Source of the DNA: Octopus bimaculoides
Lineage: Eukaryota
Length of the DNA: 64,000 bases
Direction: 5' to 3'
Assembly: GCF_001194135.2 (NCBI RefSeq)
Contig: NC_068983.1
Location: 165,905,374-165,969,373 of the forward strand
This document shows, in pieces, positions 2,079 through 64,000 of the stretch (the first letter of the stretch is position 1; every line of letters begins with the position of its first letter). The notes below the pieces were generated by a model that was given only the letters and a program-made list of their open reading frames with translations, was not told where the DNA came from and made no database searches. A program made the position numbers and the translations under genes.

Positions 2079-27737
<25,659 letters not shown>

Positions 27738-30408: not shown

Positions 30409-46086
<15,678 letters not shown>

Positions 46087-47334: not shown

Positions 47335-48555
47335 TACGAGTGGTGTGTTCATTAAAGATTTCCCCTGACCCACTTCCCAAGAACTGGGATAAATGAAACT
47401 TGGCATAATTATTAGTCCTTCCCTACATGGCCACCACCGATGGTGACACACTTCTCCCATCACTATATGCAGCTGTGAAGACCTCGTCTGTAGAAGTTGG
47501 TAGGTTGTGTCTGGAGCCAAGACTTTACCTTGGAAACAAGTTCATTATCATCTGAAAAGTGGTGGAAGTCAGATGGTGCAAGGTTGGGAGAGTAAGGGGG
47601 ATGAGGAAGGATTTCATAGCTGCTGGAGTGTGCTTCATCTGGGCAACATGCACATTGCAAACTGAGGTGTTGTCTTGGAGGAGATGGACTCCTTTTGTCA
47701 GTTTGCCATGCCTCTCTGCTTTAATGGCATCTTGCAATTTCTGCAGCAGAAATATACCTCATTAACTGTGGTGTGCTTTGCCAGAAAATCCATCATCACA
47801 ACTCCACGCTGGTCCCAAAAGACTGAGCACCACCTTGCCTGCTGAGGGTTGGACACGAGCCTTCTTTGAAGGTGGTGAGTTATCATGCTTCCATTGCTTC
47901 AACTATAGTCTCAGAATTATAGTGATGTATCCATGTCTCATCTTGTGTGATAAGACTGCTGAAAAAGTCTTCGTTTTCTTGGCACGTTGTCAAAAGAGCC
48001 TGGGAGCAATTGACTCGTTAAAGGTGTGAGTATCCGGGGAATCTACCATGCAGATAACTTCCACGTGCAAATGGTCATGAATCATTTTTTTTTCCCACAG
48101 ACCCTACACTTGTCTTCACTTCTTGCGCTAGTTGCCAAATAGTTATGTGGCAATCCTCCAAAATGGCAGCTTCCACTTTATTGATGATGTCATCATCAAT
48201 GGCAGAATGTAGTTACCCAGGAATAGGAGCAGTTTCCACCAATGTCCAGCTGCATTTGAACTGGCGATGCCAGTGTTTGACTACGTCATATGATGGTGCA
48301 TCGTCACCATAAACTTCTTTCATCTCATCAAAAGTCTCTTTTGGTTTATGACCTTTCAAGTATAAGAGCCTGATCACTGATCTGCATTCGTCTGCCTCCA
48401 TTTAATAATACCTTAGTCCACTTCTGAAGCCGTAAAAGACAAACGAATACTAGTGGAAAGCTGCAATTTACAATGCAACATGTAGAAACATGTATAATTA
48501 TACTTGGAACAAGTTCCGTTTCCTGCAATAACTGGAAGTAAGTCGGGGGAAATCT
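47335..48555 (-). mobile_element. Mariner transposon, degraded near-full-length transposase
   Basis: MEADECRSVIRLLYLKG HTH, SVFWDQRG, LLQDN, HPPYSPNLAPSDFH; left TIR at 47335, right TIR truncated at 48555. Confidence 0.9.
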
Positions 48556-49340
48556 GGAAGTCTGGACCAATCCAAACTCCAAGTAGCTTAACAGGACCTT
48601 TTGTCCAACACTCCACAACGTTATTGGACGCCATCGGCTTGATCCTCCAGATGCTGAGTTGCAAACTAACCAACCTGTCCTTGTTAACCTTTGCTCCTGC
48701 CACCGCCTCCTAACTTCTGGGTCCTTCCTGATCAACATCACCACCCCTCGTCTCGCAGACTTGGGAATTCTCCCATTCTGCTGCCAATAGGTGTAGACAA
48801 TGGCCAACAGGTGCTCGAACAAGTCTGGCATACTTTTATAAAATTCATAGGGTAGACCATCAAGACCCGGTGACTTCTCCCCGGGGCATTTGCCTAGTAC
48901 CTTGATCACCTCCTCGGCTGTAATTGGCCCTTCGCAGCACTCAGCATCTCGGGCCACCGGACAGGAAGTCCCTAAGGGCCTCACCATGATCCAGCGTCCC
49001 ACCCCTCCCAAATAACTCAGTGAAGTACTTGTAAAGTGCCTCACACATCATGTCTTGTCCGTCGACTGAACTCCCATTGTCATCAACAAGAGACTTTATT
49101 GTGACATCATTGCCACACTGGGTTTCTACCGTACGGGCCCATCCGACAGCATTAATTCCCTCACGGCCCAATATGCGCACTTTAGCCCGGACTCTGCACC
49201 CCTCGTGTTTGGCTTTGAGGTGACGGTCCAAGGCCATTCTCGCTGCCAGAATGTGGGATGTAGAGCCCAACCTCAATGCCTCCTCTAAGTCCTTAACTAG
49301 CTGCCATTCTATTCTAGTCTTAGCTAGTGGCTCCCCTAAT
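48552..49340 (-). mobile_element. L1/Tx1-clade LINE fragment with internal deletion of RT core
   Basis: PITAEEV..KSPGLDGLPYEFY..RGVVMLIRKDP joined directly to EAVAGAKVN..PVKLLGVWIGPD. Confidence 0.8.
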
Positions 49341-49949
49341 GGGGAGGGGCACAAAAATTAGTTGCAGGCTAATGTCAATGACAGGATATAATGCATGGCT
49401 GTCATAACATTTCATATGCCATTAGCATAGCAATAAGGGTTTCAAATTTTAGTACAAGGCCAGCACTTTGGGGGAGGGGGTAAGTCAATTACATCAACCC
49501 CAGTATTCAACTGGTACTTGTTTTATCAACCCCAAAAGATGAAAGGCAAAGTCAACTTCAGTGGAATTTGAACTCAGCATTTTGACTGGTGTGCTAATAA
49601 TTCTACCAGCTTTGCCACCTTTTATGGCAAAGCAATATTGTCTGGAGAAATTCCTCATGTAAATATTTCTTTTCATATTATAAACTATTGTTTATATCCA
49701 CCCAACCACGGAAGATGATAATCATATTCTGAAATGAACCATGTCAAAGGAAAGGAAACCATTCAACTACAAAATGTTTTCTTGAAACAAACAAAAACAG
49801 AAAAATTATAATTTGCATAATTTGGCAATTTTAGATGTTTTTACACTATTTTGTTTTTTAATCCAGTTCTGAGATGAAAATGGAATCCATTCTCAACCAG
49901 AAGACAATAGAAACTGGCATGGTTCTTCTTGCAATTCTTCAAAGTATTG

Positions 49950-57170: not shown

Positions 57171-57767
57171 TAGACATATATCTCCCTTGTTTTTACATGG
57201 TTTTTGATTTACACTTGACTGATGGACCTAATCAGTCATGTAGTCCCAGGGTCAGCTGTACAAACCATTTAGCTTTGTCCAAAACATGCAACTACTATAC
57301 TCTGGAAACAGTTATGCTTTCAACTTTTTACATCTTGACTGTCATTATCAACAGAACAACCACACACACACACACACACATTTGCACGCAGCTTCTATAC
57401 TCTGGTTGCAGATCTCCAGTTATAACTACAGATAATAGTGTTTTTGGTACCAAATGCTAAATCAGTAACCAAAATATAGGAAGATGGCAGTAAGCACTAT
57501 AAGGTATTTATAATGCCTAAATAAATAGTTTTAACCCTTTTGTTAAAATACACTACCTTTGTTTTAATAAATTTTGATAATAATTAGGAATATTTTGTAA
57601 AATAACTGTCATATTATGTTGGTGTTTGATATATAACATGAAATTTTGATGGAAAGATGTAAATCTAGTGTACTTTAGAACAGGAAATTTGTATCATTGA
57701 AACGAAAACCGGTTTTGGTTCAGTTGGTGCCAAAAGGGTTACAAAAGAAGCATCCTTCAAACTTGAT

Positions 57768-58363
57768 TTAGAAAATGCTTTGGAGGACCTCAGGACATGA
57801 TGCAGAATGGTTCCTTTCATAGCAATCATTGTATGGGACAAGCAAATCTGTTTTCTTATCAATGTATTCTTCATTAGAATCACTTTCACTGGGTGCCAGA
57901 GTAAAACATGAGACTCCAGGGTCCCAGTTTTGAAGAGCTGTTGTATTATCAACAAAAGAAATCACTGGTTTATCAGACTTGTATGTCACTTTAGCAAATG
58001 GCGTGTCGCCTTCAAACAACAATTGTCCATTTAACAAAATACTTGGTCTGTTGTGAGGTTTATAGGCAGGTTTCACTTCCTCGTCAATTAATTTGTTTGT
58101 CTCCAACTCATCTTTCTCTGTATTGTCAACATCGTCTGACATATCTTCTTCCATTCCTGAAGATTTTTTTGCAGTCTTTTTGTGGAACTTCTTGATAACA
58201 CAACTAATGAAATTCAAAATCAAAATGATACTTAAAACACACAGTATGAAAACTAAAATGTTTAAAACCATCTTCAAGTGAATCAATTCTGCTTCTGGAT
58301 TTGGAATCTGACCAATTTTTTTGGACGTAGCAAAGAAATGGGTTGTGCATTCCACTGAAGTCT
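57768..58363 (-). CDS. Transmembrane + cytoplasmic exon of orphan membrane protein
   Basis: Part of the 210-aa ORF 57768..58400; polypyrimidine AG at 58365-58364; about 26-aa hydrophobic run followed by a basic cluster. Confidence 0.78.
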
Positions 58364-59971
58364 CTGAAACAAATGAAACTATATTGGAGATTACAAACAC
58401 AAATAATAATAATAATTATTATTGAAGCAAAAAAAAAAGATATGACTGTAGAGAACAAGAAAAAGAGAAAAACAGTGTAATATGATGGGTTTTGCAAAGT
58501 CCTTTTTGATAAGAGAGTGGATACCAAAGAAATTGAGAAATACGAAGACTTAGCCAAAGAGAAATGAACAGATTATGGAAGGCAAAAGTGAAGATTGTTC
58601 TTGCGGTATTTGGTGCATTTGATACCACATCCAAATTGCAATCTAAGAGGCTGAAGAATACTGGAATTGAGACATGCATTACCAAACTGCAGAAAAGTGC
58701 AATTCTGTATTCTGCACAAATTCTAAGAAAGATGCTTGAGGTTTGAGGAGACTTGTTCTCACCAAACCTCAGGATAACGTACCTCCTCATTAAATTAGCT
58801 CATTATAGCTTTTGAGTAGTAGTAGTAGTAGTTTCTACTACAGGCACAAGGCCTAAAATTTTTGGGAGGGGAGAGGACAAGTTGGTTACACTGACCCCCC
58901 CCCCCCCATCCATGTTCATGGTGGTAGTAGTAGTTTCAAATGTTGGCATAAGGCCAACAGTTTTCAGGTTAGGGGGTTAATCAATTACATCTACCCCAGT
59001 ACTTGACTGCTATTTTATTTTATTGACCCCCAAAAGGATGAAAGGCAGAGTTGACCTTGGCAGGATTTGAACTCAGAAGAAATACTGCAAAATATTTCTT
59101 TCTTTGAAGAAAGCCACCAAGGAAATAGGCCCAGCAGCAAGAACTAGCTCAAGGTGGCCATGGTTGAAAAGAAACTGCAAGTGGAACCGTTCTGTAGGGG
59201 AAGACTAGTTCCCTGCCCCACTCAGGTGAAGTGCGCAGGCTAAGGGGCAGAACACTTGTGACCCTGAGATATCTGTTGGCGCTAATGGAAGGGCTTTCGA
59301 AGAGCAAACCTCTGAATAACCCCTGCAGTTTCTCTGTATGGGGCAAGGCATCTCCGATATTTATTCCCCCTCACTTTCTGCTGCCTTAGAGATGACGAGA
59401 AGAATCAGCCCAAACACTGGTGTTTTATTCGCTGACCCCAGAAGGGTGGAAACAATGTTGGCCTTGGTGAGGCCTTTGCCATTATTGAGCTGCTGATTGG
59501 AACATAAATTAACATGAAATTGTGAAGGAAGATTTTAATTTAGATCACTTTCAAGTAAGAAACATGTTTCATAGAACCATGGTCAGTCCAAGATGAGTTA
59601 GTCTCAAAAGGGTTATTAATCTTTATTACTCTTTGTTTATAAACTTGCTTTACCTTTTTTCTCCGGAAGGTGACAGGTGGCAGTAAACGTCTGCAAGTTA
59701 CACAAAGCTTTGCAGCTGAAAACCTGTGCTGTACGTCTGTCACTTATTCTTATTTTTGAAAAATATCCATTATGGAATTTTGGTTGTTTACTAATGGTCA
59801 AAACCACTTCTTTGTGAGTGTCCTGGTCTATTTCTTGTACCCACCAAATATGTTCACATTTCAAGTGTGTGTCTGTTAAATCTGTTACTTTACAATTTAA
59901 AGATTGTGTGTTGTTGGTGTTTCCAGAAGATTCTTTCACAGTAATCATTATTTGTATCTGTCCTTCTACAT
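57768..59971 (-). CDS. Orphan Ig-like domain, single-pass type I membrane protein (5' end uncertain)
   Basis: Exon 59971-59654 (318 nt, phase 1-1, tttttAG/GTAAAG) encodes SLNCKV..IWW..GYFSKIRI..FSC. It splices in frame to exon 58363-57768 (ttgtttcAG), which encodes a stalk, TM segment MVLNILVFILCVLSIILILNFISCVI, KKFHKK stop-transfer and an acidic cytoplasmic tail ending QSIF*. Confidence 0.75.
58480..58790 (+). mobile_element. RLE-encoding (R4/Dong-like) non-LTR retrotransposon 3' fragment
   Basis: KIEKYEDLAKE..RLWKAKVKIVLAVFGAF..LQKSAILYSAQILRKMLEV*. Confidence 0.75.
59100..59340 (+). mobile_element. Possible HERO/NeSL-like RLE LINE 3' end
   Basis: LKKATKEIGPAARTSSRWPWLKR resembles the C-terminus of this clade. 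Confidence 0.4.
59654..59971 (-). CDS. Ig-like domain exon of orphan membrane protein
   Basis: Open frame of 105 codons, phase 1 at both ends, Cys...Trp...x-x-Cys spacing typical of a constant-type Ig fold. Confidence 0.7.
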
Positions 59972-60898
59972 CTAAAAACGATGAAATAAAAAAAGATTAT
60001 TTATTTGAAATTATGAAATCTACAAGAAATGTTAGTTTTTGTTGTATCTTTCATATTTTTTATAGAAAAAATTCTTCCTTCATTTCATTGAGGAATTTTG
60101 TTGTATTTTTATGAGTTGACCAAAATTAAAGGAACAATAACATAACACCTAAAAAAACTTCCCAAGTTAGTGGAGAAATTTGATGTTTTGTACAAACTTC
60201 TGAAGGCTGGTAGCTGTTGGAATTTGGGGTAAGAATTTAACCTTTTTGTTGACATATTTCTGCTGAAATACTCTGCCTTTGTTTCATTTAACTGTCATTA
60301 TTAATCTGGTGTTTGGGACATGAAATTATGATGGAAGGTTTTAATTTATATCGCTTTAAAACAGGAATTTTGTATTATTAAAACCAGGAACCATCGTTAG
60401 TGGGTTAATATCAAAAGTGGGTTAATTTCAACCAGCTGAAAATGGGTAGATTTACTTCTGAGGGTAGAGAACATAGATTCGATAGATTTTTCACAAATTA
60501 GTAAATTCAAAGTGTCAGAGAGTTAAGCCTTCTTTAGCATTTAAACCGGTCAAAATATTCTGTCTGTTTTATGCTCAAATTGGCCAGATCTGGTTTCTTA
60601 CACCTACCTGACAATGTCATTCTAAAAATCAAAATCTCATCGCTACAAGATAATACATGATTAATTCAAAACAGTGTGAAAAAATAAGCATTACTTCTGA
60701 CAGAATAATAGGAATGCTAAAGAATTAAGCAATTGCTTTTATAAAACAGCCGTAAACTCCCACAAAACCATTTCCTGTTGCTTCAGGTTCAGCTATACCA
60801 CTGAACTTCTCTCCTACTCGTTTCTGTTGAAATGCACCGGCTTTGTTTCAATTAATTTTGAAATAATGAAGAATTTAGTAAAATAACTTATGTCGTTA

Positions 60899-61126
60899 TT
60901 AACCCGTGAACATTCAGATTATCTTATTAAATGTAATGTTTATTTATTTACATTGTTTTGAATGAATCATGATTCATCTCATAAATTTAAGATTTCAATG
61001 ATGCAATTGTTTATTTTTAGGATGACATTGTAGGGAAGGTTTGAGGAGCCAGATCTGGCCAGTTTGAATGTAAAACAGATAAAATCTATGGGCCAGATAT
61101 GGTCTACTTAAATGCCAAAGGGTTAA
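60899..61126. mobile_element. Second TTAA MITE family, nested in a first-family copy
   Basis: TTAA 60899-60902 and 61123-61126 interrupt the host consensus GTCATTATTAATCTGGTGTTTGG; other copies at 25635-25854, 60527-60724 (inverted), 8651-8740 (partial). Confidence 0.8.
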
Positions 61127-62071
61127 TCTGGTGTTTGGAATTAGCCTGAAATTTTTATGGAAGGATCAATTTAAAACACAGAGTCTGTATCATGGGCCCA
61201 GGGACAATCTCAGGTAGATCGGTATCAAAAGGGTTGAAATATTTTTAACCAAGTACCAAGATATGTGTCATTTGAAAGTTGTGTCACGGCTGATATACAA
61301 GATTCTCTACAAGAGTAAAGGTTTTAGTGATAATTAAACAGGTTTTATATAAATAAAGCAGAGTAGAAAAGAATAACATTGTATGAGATGTATTTATCAA
61401 CATGAGGCCCCTCGGTTCAATATTGAAATGGTGATCAGATATTAATGTGGTGCTACTGTATTTAAATTGTTGTCAACCTGTGAGAGAGAAATTAAATCTT
61501 TTCCATGTAAGATAATCCACCAAACCTTGTAATTCAAAGCTAACACTTATTCAGACAATCAAGAAAGCTTTCTTTATTTTTGTATGAGTGTGTGTGNNNN
61601 NNNNNNGTAAGTGTGTGTATGAATGTGTAGTTGGGGGGAGGGGTGTTTGAATGTATGTGTGTACAAATGTGTGTGTAAGCATGCAGGTGTAATACTATGT
61701 GGGGATGGTGTGTGTGCGTGTGTGCATGTATCCCTCTGTGTGTGTGTGTATACTGGAGCAGAATGTGTATCACCATGCCACCTGTTATCTCAGTCCTTAC
61801 TTTGTACTACAACAAGATGTCTGAGGTTTGTGATGATCTGTGAGCATTGAAGTAATTTAATCTTCATTGACGACATCCAACTCGTTTATTATTCTTTTTC
61901 TCCACACCTCTTTTATAAATTCCTTACAACCAAACCAGTGTGTCCAATCTCTGGGGTCCCACTGCCACAAAACAACAAATCCTTCAGATTCCAAACCACC
62001 CCTTATTCAGTTTATACTGTCCCTGCTATAAAACAACAACAATAAACTCCCTCAAACTCACATTCATAACA

Positions 62072-62309
62072 TACAGGGTTGGCCAAAAGTCAGCTGACAC
62101 TAAATGAAACCCATTTAATTCCAAGATTTATTTAATTTTTAACAACTGAATGAATTTAATAAAAGCACCTAAATATGAAACCTCAGGAAAATTGTTCAAC
62201 CTGAAGTCCTTCTCGACTGACACATTTTTCCATTCGAATCATTACAGAATTACAGATAATATTTATGGAATTTTGATTTACTGTCAGGTGACTTTTGACC
62301 AATCTTGTA
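62072..62309. mobile_element. Tc1/mariner MITE
   Basis: 28-nt TIR TACAGGGTTGGCCAAAAGTCAGCTGACA matches the other end 24/28; TA ends. Confidence 0.85.
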
Positions 62310-63615
62310 GTCTATGCTTTCAGTTCTTCCATTCCCCTTAACTTACCCCTCACATATTTTTCTGGTTCTGTCACTCAAATAACACCTCTCATTTGCAAAG
62401 TCTTCCTTTTCATTCTTCACAATGTGATATAAACAAACCAACACCCCGGTCATTAGCAAGTGGAACTTCCAGCTTAGTGCAGTGAATCTTCTTCAGTTTA
62501 ATCTTCAACAGAAACTTTGCCATTATGGGAGCCCTCCAGGAAATGTAGAGACCAACCCCATTGTTTATACATTGTAGTTTTGGATGGACTATAATTACTG
62601 TATGTTGTTAATGATTAATGAGAAGAATTATGTGAGATCACAAGGGTCCCATGTGGCATGCTTGCTACATGTTGTAAATGGAAGGTGAAATGACTGCATT
62701 AGTAGAGCGCTTCTAGACTTTTCTTTTGCTTGTGGCAGCCATTAGATTGTGGCCATGCTGCAGCACTGCCTTCAAGAATTTTCAGTCAAATGAATCAACC
62801 ACAGAACTTTTTTCTCTCTAAGCCTGGTACTTATTCTGTTAGGTCTCTTTTGCCAAATTGCTAACTTATGGGGATGTAAACACACCAACATTGGTTGTCA
62901 AAGCAGTGTGGGGGACAAACACACACGCACAGATAGATGACAGGCTTCTTTCAGTTTCCGTCTACTATATCCACTCACAAGGATTTGGTTAGCCCGAGGC
63001 TATAGTAGAAGACACTTGCCCAAGGTGTCACACAGTCGGACTGAACCTGGGGCCATGTGACTGGGAAGCAAGCTTCTTACCACACAGCCACTCCTGCACC
63101 TACAATGAAATATTTATGGGTGGACGTTGGTTCACTGGAATTATTGATTATAATTTGTAAATATCAAATAAAAATAAAAGTCTATTAAAGTGTTAGGGTG
63201 GGTGTATGGGGAAAAAACTTTCCAACCATGTGGTTTCAAGTTCAGTCCCACTGTGCAGTAGATGGAGGCCAATGTCTTCTACTGTAGTTCTGGGTCAACC
63301 AAAATTTTGTGAATGGATTTGATAGACGGAAATTGAAAGTAGCCTGTTGTGTGTGTGTATAATTTTTTTGGACTAATGGGTATATGTCAATTAGCATGCT
63401 GTGTAAAGTACATTCACCATTTTGAGCCACCTGGTGTCATCAACGGTTGGGGTATAATTCCACTGGATCTACATCAGGAATTCCACAGTTTTAGTTGAAA
63501 TAGGAATAACTGATGAAAGAAACAGAAGATGGATTTGATTCTAGTCTTTAAAGACCAGAACAAAATCTATCTTTTGTTTCCTTCATTAATCATTACTATA
63601 TGTATATGGGTATAT

Positions 63616-64000
63616 TACAGAGGCATCAAGCTGTTAGATCAGGTTATGAAAGTTACAGAGAGGGTCATAGCCCAACTAATTAGGGAGCGAATCAATTTAG
63701 ATGAGATGCAGTTTGGGTTCGAGCCAGGTAAAAGCACTACTGATGCCTTATTTCTAGTGAGACAGTTGCAGGAGAAATACCTAGCTAAGGATAAACCTCT
63801 GTACCTGGCTTTCGTTGACATGGAGAAAGCCTTTGACAGGGTCCCCCGATCCCTTATCTGGTGGTCAATGAGGAAACTTGGGATAGAAGAATGGTTAGTG
63901 AGAGCTGTGCGAGCCATGTACAGAGATGCTGCCAGTAAGGTGAGGGTTGGAAATGAGTACAGCAATGAATTCCGGGTAGAGGTAGGGGTCCACCAAGGTT
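63616..64000 (+). mobile_element. 5'-truncated RTE-clade LINE, RT frame open to window end
   Basis: YRGIKLLDQVMKV...QFGFEPGKSTTDALF...FVDMEKAFDRVPR...GVHQG; same family as 13651-15592. Confidence 0.92.

Follow-up and report, generated by a model that had tools for sequence, protein, structure and literature searches.

A predicted type I membrane protein with a divergent immunoglobulin-like domain and a constrained cytoplasmic tail encoded by LOC106867350 of Octopus bimaculoides

Gene structure and transcripts

We analysed a 64,000-nucleotide stretch of the Octopus bimaculoides genome (contig NC_068983.1, positions 165,905,374 to 165,969,373; hereafter the window), the minus strand of which carries the last two of the three coding exons of LOC106867350, a gene annotated as "uncharacterized protein" (Table 1). 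An earlier interpretation made from the letters alone (the sequence-only reading) had described here a phase 1-1 exon with B, C, E and F strand motifs of an immunoglobulin superfamily (IgSF) domain and three extra cysteines, spliced in frame to a stalk, a 26-residue transmembrane segment, a basic stop-transfer and an acidic, tyrosine-bearing tail ending in QSIF, and all of these elements can be read in the DNA. Coding exon 2 is in phase 1 at both ends, spans 105 whole codons and translates as (D)VEGQIQIMITVKESSGNTNNTQSLNCKVTDLTDTHLKCEHIWWVQEIDQDTHKEVVLTISKQPKFHNGYFSKIRISDRRTAQVFSCKALCNLQTFTATCHLPEKK, with the motifs SLNCKVTDL, IWW, GYFSKIRI and FSC and five cysteines, two canonical and three extra. 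It supplies the last residues of the signal peptide together with the cleavage region, followed by the core strands A, B, C, C', E, F and G, and holds the conserved residues Cys26, Cys38, Trp43, Cys86, Cys90 and Cys99. This exon is bounded by the acceptor tcgtttttAG at 59973-59972 and the donor GTAAAG at 59653, and joins in frame to position 58363 (acceptor tttgtttcAG at 58364-58365) through a split glutamate codon (G/AG). The terminal exon opens with the stalk ETSVECTTHFFATSKKIGQIPNPEAELIHLK and closes with the stop codon TAA at 57770-57768 on the minus strand, after a cytoplasmic tail of 141 residues.

Splicing between the two exons was observed in transcripts. The sequence-only reading had put forward the junction from 59654 to 58363 as a check, and this junction, which skips 1290 nucleotides with CT..AC ends on the plus strand (GT..AG in sense), was found in assembled RNA contigs of five runs (X3, X15, X17, X18 and X25) that represent three studies, one of them from 2015. 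That reading had also named, as evidence against a receptor, either missing spliced transcripts or the lack of a predicted β-sandwich combined with a transposon match; splicing was seen, a β-sandwich was predicted and the product carries no transposable-element domain. At plus-strand position 58070, the contigs of X15, X17 and X18, and not those of X3 and X25, carry a G>A change; read in sense it is C>T (CCT>TCT) and replaces a proline by serine (Pro204Ser) within the variable acidic stretch of the tail. Adenosine-to-inosine editing was considered for this site and rejected, since the change is C>T in sense and therefore a polymorphism.

The 5' end of the gene lies outside the window. Approximately 258 nucleotides of the X3 contig (1,803 nucleotides) located 5' of exon 2 map nowhere in 59960-64000, and a search for upstream exons within the same interval found none there. 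The loose end of this contig (~30-32 nucleotides) reads in sense and in frame as ...FSLFCLSFLK/D and is an exact match to positions 1602-1633 of the genomic locus fetched for the NCBI protein P0001 (L003). Coding exon 1 occupies positions 1585-1633 of this locus (~window coordinates 68364-68316), beginning with an ATG at 1585 and followed by GTGAGT; it encodes MDYFLLFSLFCLSFLK, ends in a phase-1 donor and, in the X3 transcript, continues directly into exon 2. It is thus placed ~4.3 kb past the window end, behind an assembly gap of 2,504 N that starts right after window position 64000, and intron 1 measures ~8.3 kb in total. The full product comprises ~320 residues including the signal peptide, which by the -3/-1 rule is probably MDYFLLFSLFCLSFLKDVEG, cleaved after VEG and before Q.

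The public model of the protein (P0001, LOC106867350, 296 residues) is 100% identical to the spliced product, although it begins at the internal methionine of MITV and accordingly lacks the signal peptide. Automated annotation based on this N-terminally incomplete model would wrongly class the protein as non-secretory. Run X17 contained a different 5' exon (...TCTTAAGCCTTTGTAGTTTTAAAAATCCACAG) with an in-frame TAA, also joined to exon 2, which would yield a transcript without a signal peptide, like isoform X2 of O. sinensis; the two upstream exons of runs X17 and X3 parallel the pair of isoforms (X1 and X2) annotated in that species. The alternative exon was not found in the window or the 10 kb upstream; the 2.5-kb assembly gap may conceal it, or it may be more distant.

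Table 1. Positions of LOC106867350 features in the window
Feature	Position	Strand	Basis
Intron 1, 3' part	59972..64000	-	No transcript contig of LOC106867350 maps here
Coding exon 2, 318 nt	59654..59971	-	Sequence, splice sites, RNA contigs ending exactly at both boundaries
Intron 2, 1,290 nt, GT..AG	58364..59653	-	RNA junction 58363/59654
Terminal exon, coding part (stalk, transmembrane segment, cytoplasmic tail)	57768..58363	-	Open reading frame, translation, 100% identity to P0001
Stalk segment VECTTHFF, predicted eighth β-strand, with Cys111	58329..58352	-	AlphaFold2 strands 110-118 and 113-117
Predicted 26-aa transmembrane segment MVLNILVFILCVLSIILILNFISCVI, then KKFHKKTAKK	58194..58271	-	Kyte-Doolittle, AlphaFold2 helix
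Cytoplasmic conserved block 1 RPSILLNGQLLFEGDTPFAKVTYKSDKPVISFVDNTTALQNWDPGVSCFTLA	57894..58049	-	Invariant columns, dN/dS
Cytoplasmic conserved block 2 LLVPYNDCYERNHSASCPEV	57786..57845	-	Invariant L, P, ND, Y, SASCP
C-terminal Q-S-I-F	57771..57782	-	Alignment of C-termini
3' untranslated region	57300..57767	-	X3 contig records 579-1642 = 58363-57300; at least 160 nt more beyond 57300

Predicted fold and affinities of the ectodomain

AlphaFold2 modelled the ectodomain as a β-sandwich of eight strands (residues 4-13, 22-29, 38-48, 53-61, 69-75, 82-90, 93-101 and 113-117), with a predicted local distance difference test score (pLDDT) of 76 and a predicted template-modelling score (pTM) of 0.73. 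Structure prediction had been suggested by the sequence-only reading, and the predicted strands B (QSLNCKVT), C (CEHIWWVQEID), E (YFSKIRI) and F (QVFSCKALC) coincide with the motifs named there. The seven core strands derive from the phase 1-1 exon, an exon form typical of IgSF domains yet not exclusive to them, while the eighth strand and a sixth cysteine (Cys111) derive from the terminal exon. Within this framework, a Cys26...Trp43...Cys86 triad is located in predicted strands B, C and F with 60 residues between the cysteines, and is invariant in all eight family members, including that of the limpet Lottia gigantea, a gastropod.

Profile comparisons pointed in the same direction at sub-threshold scores. 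Ig families were the only recurrent Pfam families among the matches of the relatives, the best relative reaching 23.4 bits to Ig_3 against a cut-off of 30 (E 8.4e-5) and 17.4 bits to I-set against 23.7; matches of the relatives also covered I-set (E 0.0045-0.076), the Unc5 N-terminal Ig domain (0.005-0.018) and V-set_CD47 (0.45). A Pfam search of the spliced octopus protein returned noise driven by the transmembrane segment only, and phmmer against PDB returned nothing. Comparison of the family profile with PDB sequences gave 47 IgSF chains among the 52 listed matches (E <= 10), aligned in the B/C/E/F register and headed by VEGFR1 D3 (E 0.0034), followed by NCAM2, VEGFR2, CD79b, DSCAM, an antibody V-kappa domain, Dpr4 and titin. 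Foldseek was run on the full-length and ectodomain models; besides the top matches considered below it listed a few nanobodies and FGFR4 D3, and all of its matches were Ig-like sandwiches. An Ig-set assignment from Foldseek was rejected, as it gave generic sandwiches only, with template-modelling scores (TM-scores) below 0.5.

Strands are predicted in the order A-B-C-(4-residue turn)-C'-E-F-G, which is C2/I-like, the short turn after strand C indicating a C-C' hairpin in the model. The sequence-only reading had considered the B-strand context to be of a constant, C1/C2-like type, which was not borne out for C1: the C1-set matched none of the eight ectodomains (E <= 10), the F strand reads VFSCKALC or VYSCHALC and lacks the YxCxVxH signature, and the best matches are to I-set/V-like domains (VEGFR1 D3, NCAM2, CD79b). 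The octopus domain aligns with I-set/C2 domains (VEGFR1 D3, NCAM2 Ig1-2, DSCAM, Dpr4 and titin) at the B-strand cysteine, C-strand tryptophan, E-strand L-x-I and F-strand Y-x-C, and shares with them the ~60-residue cysteine spacing and the phase 1-1 exon. It differs from these receptors in its marginal E-values (0.003-0.1) and poor superposition (TM-score < 0.5), and also by three extra cysteines, a stalk-derived eighth strand and unusually long strands (9-11 residues). Based on strand adjacency in the model, the six cysteines probably form three disulfides, comprising the canonical B-F pair (Cys26-Cys86), Cys38-Cys90 between strands C and F, and Cys99-Cys111 between strand G and the stalk strand.

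Taken together, the ectodomain is predicted to be a β-sandwich and is probably a highly divergent IgSF domain with I-set/C2-like strand order, an IgSF homology that sequence comparison supports at marginal statistics. Of the original description as an Ig-superfamily receptor, the β-sandwich, the invariant triad and the recurrent Ig profile matches speak for the assignment, whereas all Pfam Ig matches remain below threshold.

Membrane topology and constraint on the cytoplasmic tail

The product of LOC106867350 is predicted to be a type I single-pass membrane protein. It has a signal peptide encoded by exon 1, with equivalents in orthologues, and one hydrophobic helix whose best 19-residue Kyte-Doolittle window reaches 3.2 and which is followed by the positive-inside residues KKFHKKTAKK; AlphaFold2 places a long helix (128-172) across this segment. 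The octopus ectodomain contains one sequon, N19-N-T. Of the 141 tail residues, 27 are acidic (D+E), 17 basic (K+R) and five tyrosine. The basic cluster next to the membrane is followed by a variable acidic stretch and then by two conserved blocks that are under very strong purifying selection, and the tail ends QSIF-stop.

Block 1 (~52 residues) has hardly changed between octopus and cuttlefish. The positions that do not vary in octopods and decapodiforms read P-S-I-x-x-N-G-x-L-x-x-x-G-x-T-P-F-A-K-V-x-Y-K-S...K-P-V-x-S-x-V...A-L-Q-N-W-D-P-G-V-S-C-F-T-L, with a second invariant stretch L-x-P-x-N-D-x-Y...S-A-S-C-P. Ratios of nonsynonymous to synonymous substitution (dN/dS) were calculated by the Nei-Gojobori method, for two decapodiform transcripts against each other and for octopus against decapodiform. 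In that order, the ratios were 0.24 and 0.21 for the ectodomain, 0.11 and 0.60 for the stalk and transmembrane segment, 0.66 and 0.53 for the acidic juxtamembrane stretch and 0.077 and 0.055 for tail block 1; block 2 gave 0.22 between decapodiforms, with synonymous sites saturated between octopus and decapodiform. The tail core, and not the ectodomain, is therefore the most constrained part of the protein. The description of this receptor as fast-evolving was not upheld: with an ectodomain ratio of ~0.2 and a tail core at ~0.06-0.08, the Ig domain shows neither relaxed nor positive selection.

The sequence-only reading had suggested an adhesion or immune receptor; direct reading of the tail found no immunoreceptor tyrosine-based activation (ITAM) or inhibition (ITIM) motif and no NPxY, and none of the five tyrosine contexts (AYKPH, TYKSD, EYIDK, PYNDC and CYERN) fits an ITAM or ITIM. 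The C-terminal QSIF, taken by the sequence-only reading as a class I PDZ ligand, has the form of that motif and is conserved nowhere outside Octopus: S-I-F is confined to O. bimaculoides and O. sinensis, and is replaced by RNIF in another octopod, KRIS in Argonauta, and FCKP and KYTT in decapodiforms. Given this replacement, S-I-F cannot account for what is conserved in the tail, and the PDZ proposal is weak.

Relatives and evolutionary depth

Orthologues were sought with a word-indexed search of 5.8 billion proteins. Where the sequence-only reading had recognised no orthologue, they were found across coleoid cephalopods, together with a distant ectodomain relative of identical exon phases in Lottia. 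Octopods were represented by O. sinensis LOC115209176 (90% identical; isoform X1 with the signal peptide MNYFLLFSLFCLCFLKVLEVEGQ), a fragment from O. vulgaris, Argonauta hians (63% identical) and a fragment from another octopod, and decapodiforms by the cuttlefish Acanthosepion pharaonis and two transcript families that are 43% identical and have signal peptides. When 1.84 billion representatives were searched exhaustively with an HMMER profile, only seven matched, two of them distant, namely Lottia gigantea LOTGIDRAFT_152706 (P0024, E 9.7e-6; named 'Ig-like domain-containing protein' in UniRef) and an open reading frame (ORF) of the ENA assembly ERZ25071447 (P0025, E 1.9e-4). A search for paralogues, proposed earlier, was made by tblastn within the window and found none. 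One weak tblastn match at 34919-34596 (E 1.4) is broken by stop codons and was rejected as a candidate paralogue.

An alignment of eight sequences, from octopus to Lottia, shows no variation at L24, C26, C38, W43, E46, C86, C90 and C99; in the cephalopod proteins, E110 and C111 do not vary either. The Lottia gene, like that of octopus, has three coding exons with phase-1 boundaries throughout, and its product is likewise a predicted type I single-pass protein. At its locus (L006, KB201304.1), the signal-peptide exon ends ...TCAG/gt, the Ig exon runs from AG... to ...ATAG/gt, and the terminal exon starts with AG, completing a glutamate codon four residues before the stalk cysteine, as in octopus. 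A phase 1-1 Ig exon was also present at the ERZ25071447 locus (L004, L005), and P0025 is a predicted type I single-pass protein with the same ectodomain signature of L, C, C, W, E, C, C and C. Given the signature and exon phases shared with Lottia, the ectodomain family predates the cephalopods.

Ectodomain identity between the cephalopod and Lottia-type proteins is only 22-23%, and their cytoplasmic tails are unrelated; shared tail ancestry was considered and rejected at an hhalign probability of 0.5%. In place of the cephalopod PSILLNG...NWDPGVSCFTL block, the Lottia-type tails carry PY-type LPSY and PPSY sequences, within the QxMxDGSxxxFVP...LPSYE and SSPPSY motifs conserved between Lottia and ERZ25071447. 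PY-type motifs are typical ligands of WW domains, and their presence suggests that family members outside the cephalopods follow a different regulatory logic, of the Nedd4 type. Of the earlier suggestion that the receptor might be restricted to cephalopods, what stands is that the whole protein is known only from coleoids; sequence comparison indicates that its ectodomain, with a relative in Lottia, descends from an older molluscan family.

Proposed role and alternative explanations

We propose, at a probability of roughly 0.65, that LOC106867350 encodes a type I cell-surface recognition molecule with a single divergent IgSF-like domain, a transmembrane segment and a constrained tail. The predicted product would be a type I cell-surface glycoprotein whose single Ig-like domain, judging from the architecture and constraint of the protein, would most likely bind an extracellular or cell-surface partner and whose conserved cytoplasmic block would most likely dock a conserved intracellular one. 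In Octopus only, the C-terminal S-I-F may add a PDZ contact. A plausible description is that of an ordinary lineage-restricted receptor without a vertebrate-type C1 domain.

Several observations weigh against this proposal. The octopus protein alone has no Pfam Ig match at E <= 10, no family member attains a Pfam gathering score, and the E-values of the PDB profile matches are marginal (best single domain 0.039). The AlphaFold2 models were built from shallow alignments of 6-8 sequences (eight for the ectodomain), and the top Foldseek matches were Ig-like sandwiches from outside the IgSF (superoxide reductase, YEATS, ASF1 and ApaG) with TM-scores of 0.36-0.50 and E >= 1e-3. The conserved tail blocks match no Pfam family, no PDB chain and nothing else among the 1.84 billion representatives, and the tail was modelled at a pLDDT below 40 with hints of two β-hairpins. 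The docking role of the conserved block is therefore purely our inference. Finally, transcript levels were low, with a contig depth of 2.5-9 and essentially no exon coverage in the 2026 raw-read RNA runs X24, X35 and X36 (~6% sampling), from which it follows that expression of LOC106867350 is weak or confined to some tissues.

Single-Ig type I proteins such as the sodium-channel β subunits and CD79b act as partners in larger membrane complexes, and the main rival to a recognition molecule is that the octopus protein is likewise an auxiliary subunit, held in its complex by the transmembrane helix and the conserved tail block. We consider this unlikely, though it deserves weight: the protein is small and has a single domain, CD79b is among its best profile matches, its stalk and transmembrane segment are strongly constrained between the two decapodiforms (dN/dS 0.11) and extra cysteines could form an intermolecular bond. 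Similarity to known auxiliary subunits was nevertheless never above chance, octopus and decapodiforms have substantially different transmembrane segments (dN/dS 0.6), and the six ectodomain cysteines, an even number, fit three internal disulfides. CD79b (Ig-beta) itself resembles the octopus protein in its overall architecture of a signal peptide, one Ig-like domain, a transmembrane segment and a short tail with a signalling role, which for the octopus protein is putative; the octopus protein has no ITAM and no detectable tail similarity, and the ectodomain homology is no closer than that to the IgSF in general. Somewhat less probable again is that the ectodomain is an Ig-like sandwich not homologous to the IgSF, its Cys-Trp-Cys pattern having arisen by convergence. 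The Foldseek ranking and the sub-threshold Pfam scores, including the missing Ig match of the octopus protein itself, favour such an origin. Set against it are the IgSF identity of 47 of the 52 listed PDB profile matches in correct strand register, the Ig families as the only recurrent Pfam matches, and the phase 1-1 exon with its invariant triad of B-strand cysteine, C-strand tryptophan and F-strand YxC at 60-residue spacing.

A constant-type immune receptor of the C1-set, which would be unusual outside jawed vertebrates, is highly improbable. A few weak profile matches to antibody constant regions (E 0.3-2.5) are all that points to it, and they are outweighed by the absence of C1-set matches in all eight family members, the better matches to I-set and V-type domains, an F strand that is not YxCxVxH, the predicted C-C' hairpin and a tail without ITAM or ITIM. 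We assign next to no probability to a chance ORF, a pseudogene or a transposon-derived sequence: the introns are full of fragments of short and long interspersed nuclear elements (SINEs and LINEs) and expression is low, but the exons are correctly spliced in five runs, the product has no transposable-element domain, and intact orthologous ORFs under purifying selection occur in both octopods and decapodiforms. The recognition-molecule reading is accordingly preferred.

Novelty and significance

The literature, searched by locus name, accession and topic, yielded no publication on LOC106867350; public annotations already list the gene as encoding an uncharacterised protein. What appears somewhat novel, from sequence comparison, is the combination of a cephalopod-specific, highly constrained cytoplasmic module with an older molluscan ectodomain. 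As the cephalopod tail is both new and the most constrained part of the protein, it is the place to look for function. A bolder and doubtful extension, to which we give clearly less credence than to the recognition-molecule reading, is that block 1 (PSILLNGxLLxEGDTPFAKVTYKSxKPVISYVxxxxALQNWDPGVSCFTL) together with LLVPxNDCYxxNxSASCPEV might constitute a new intracellular signalling or docking domain, invented in coleoids and joined to an Ig-like ectodomain of older molluscan origin that has PY-tailed gastropod relatives. If true, this new coleoid tail domain would define a cephalopod-specific receptor pathway.

Divergent single-Ig membrane proteins without known function are common in invertebrate genomes, and current understanding is not overturned by this one. 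The genetic basis of the nervous-system and body-plan novelties of cephalopods is still mostly unannotated, and LOC106867350 provides a concrete, well-delimited example of a lineage-restricted cephalopod cell-surface protein.

Repeats and other features of the window

Except for LINE fragments, the 64 kb contain no other long ORF free of N. A LINE-type reverse-transcriptase fragment at 63601-63999 on the plus strand (Pfam RVT_1, E 3.7e-13), antisense in intron 1, runs off the window end, and similar reverse-transcriptase-like ORF fragments occur at 34934-35773 (-), ~15494 (+) and 48346-49354 (-). At 63511-63588, adjoining the LINE fragment, a hairpin matches the miRNA models MIR3444 and mir-577 on opposite strands and below threshold (31 bits for mir-577, the gathering score of which is 100); this palindrome probably arose by chance. 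High-copy SINE-like repeats were located at 59017-59117 in intron 2 and 62930-63199 in intron 1; neither a tRNA (ARAGORN) nor an Rfam family was detected at these repeats, where the RNA-contig word depth was 25,000-88,000 compared with 3-9 for the gene exons. The window also holds ten assembly gaps totalling 4,255 N and bordered by microsatellites (CA, TA and AAT/ATT runs), including those at 6083-6995, 15593-16440, 19257-19829, 24363-24882, 31497-31968 and 34975-35586.

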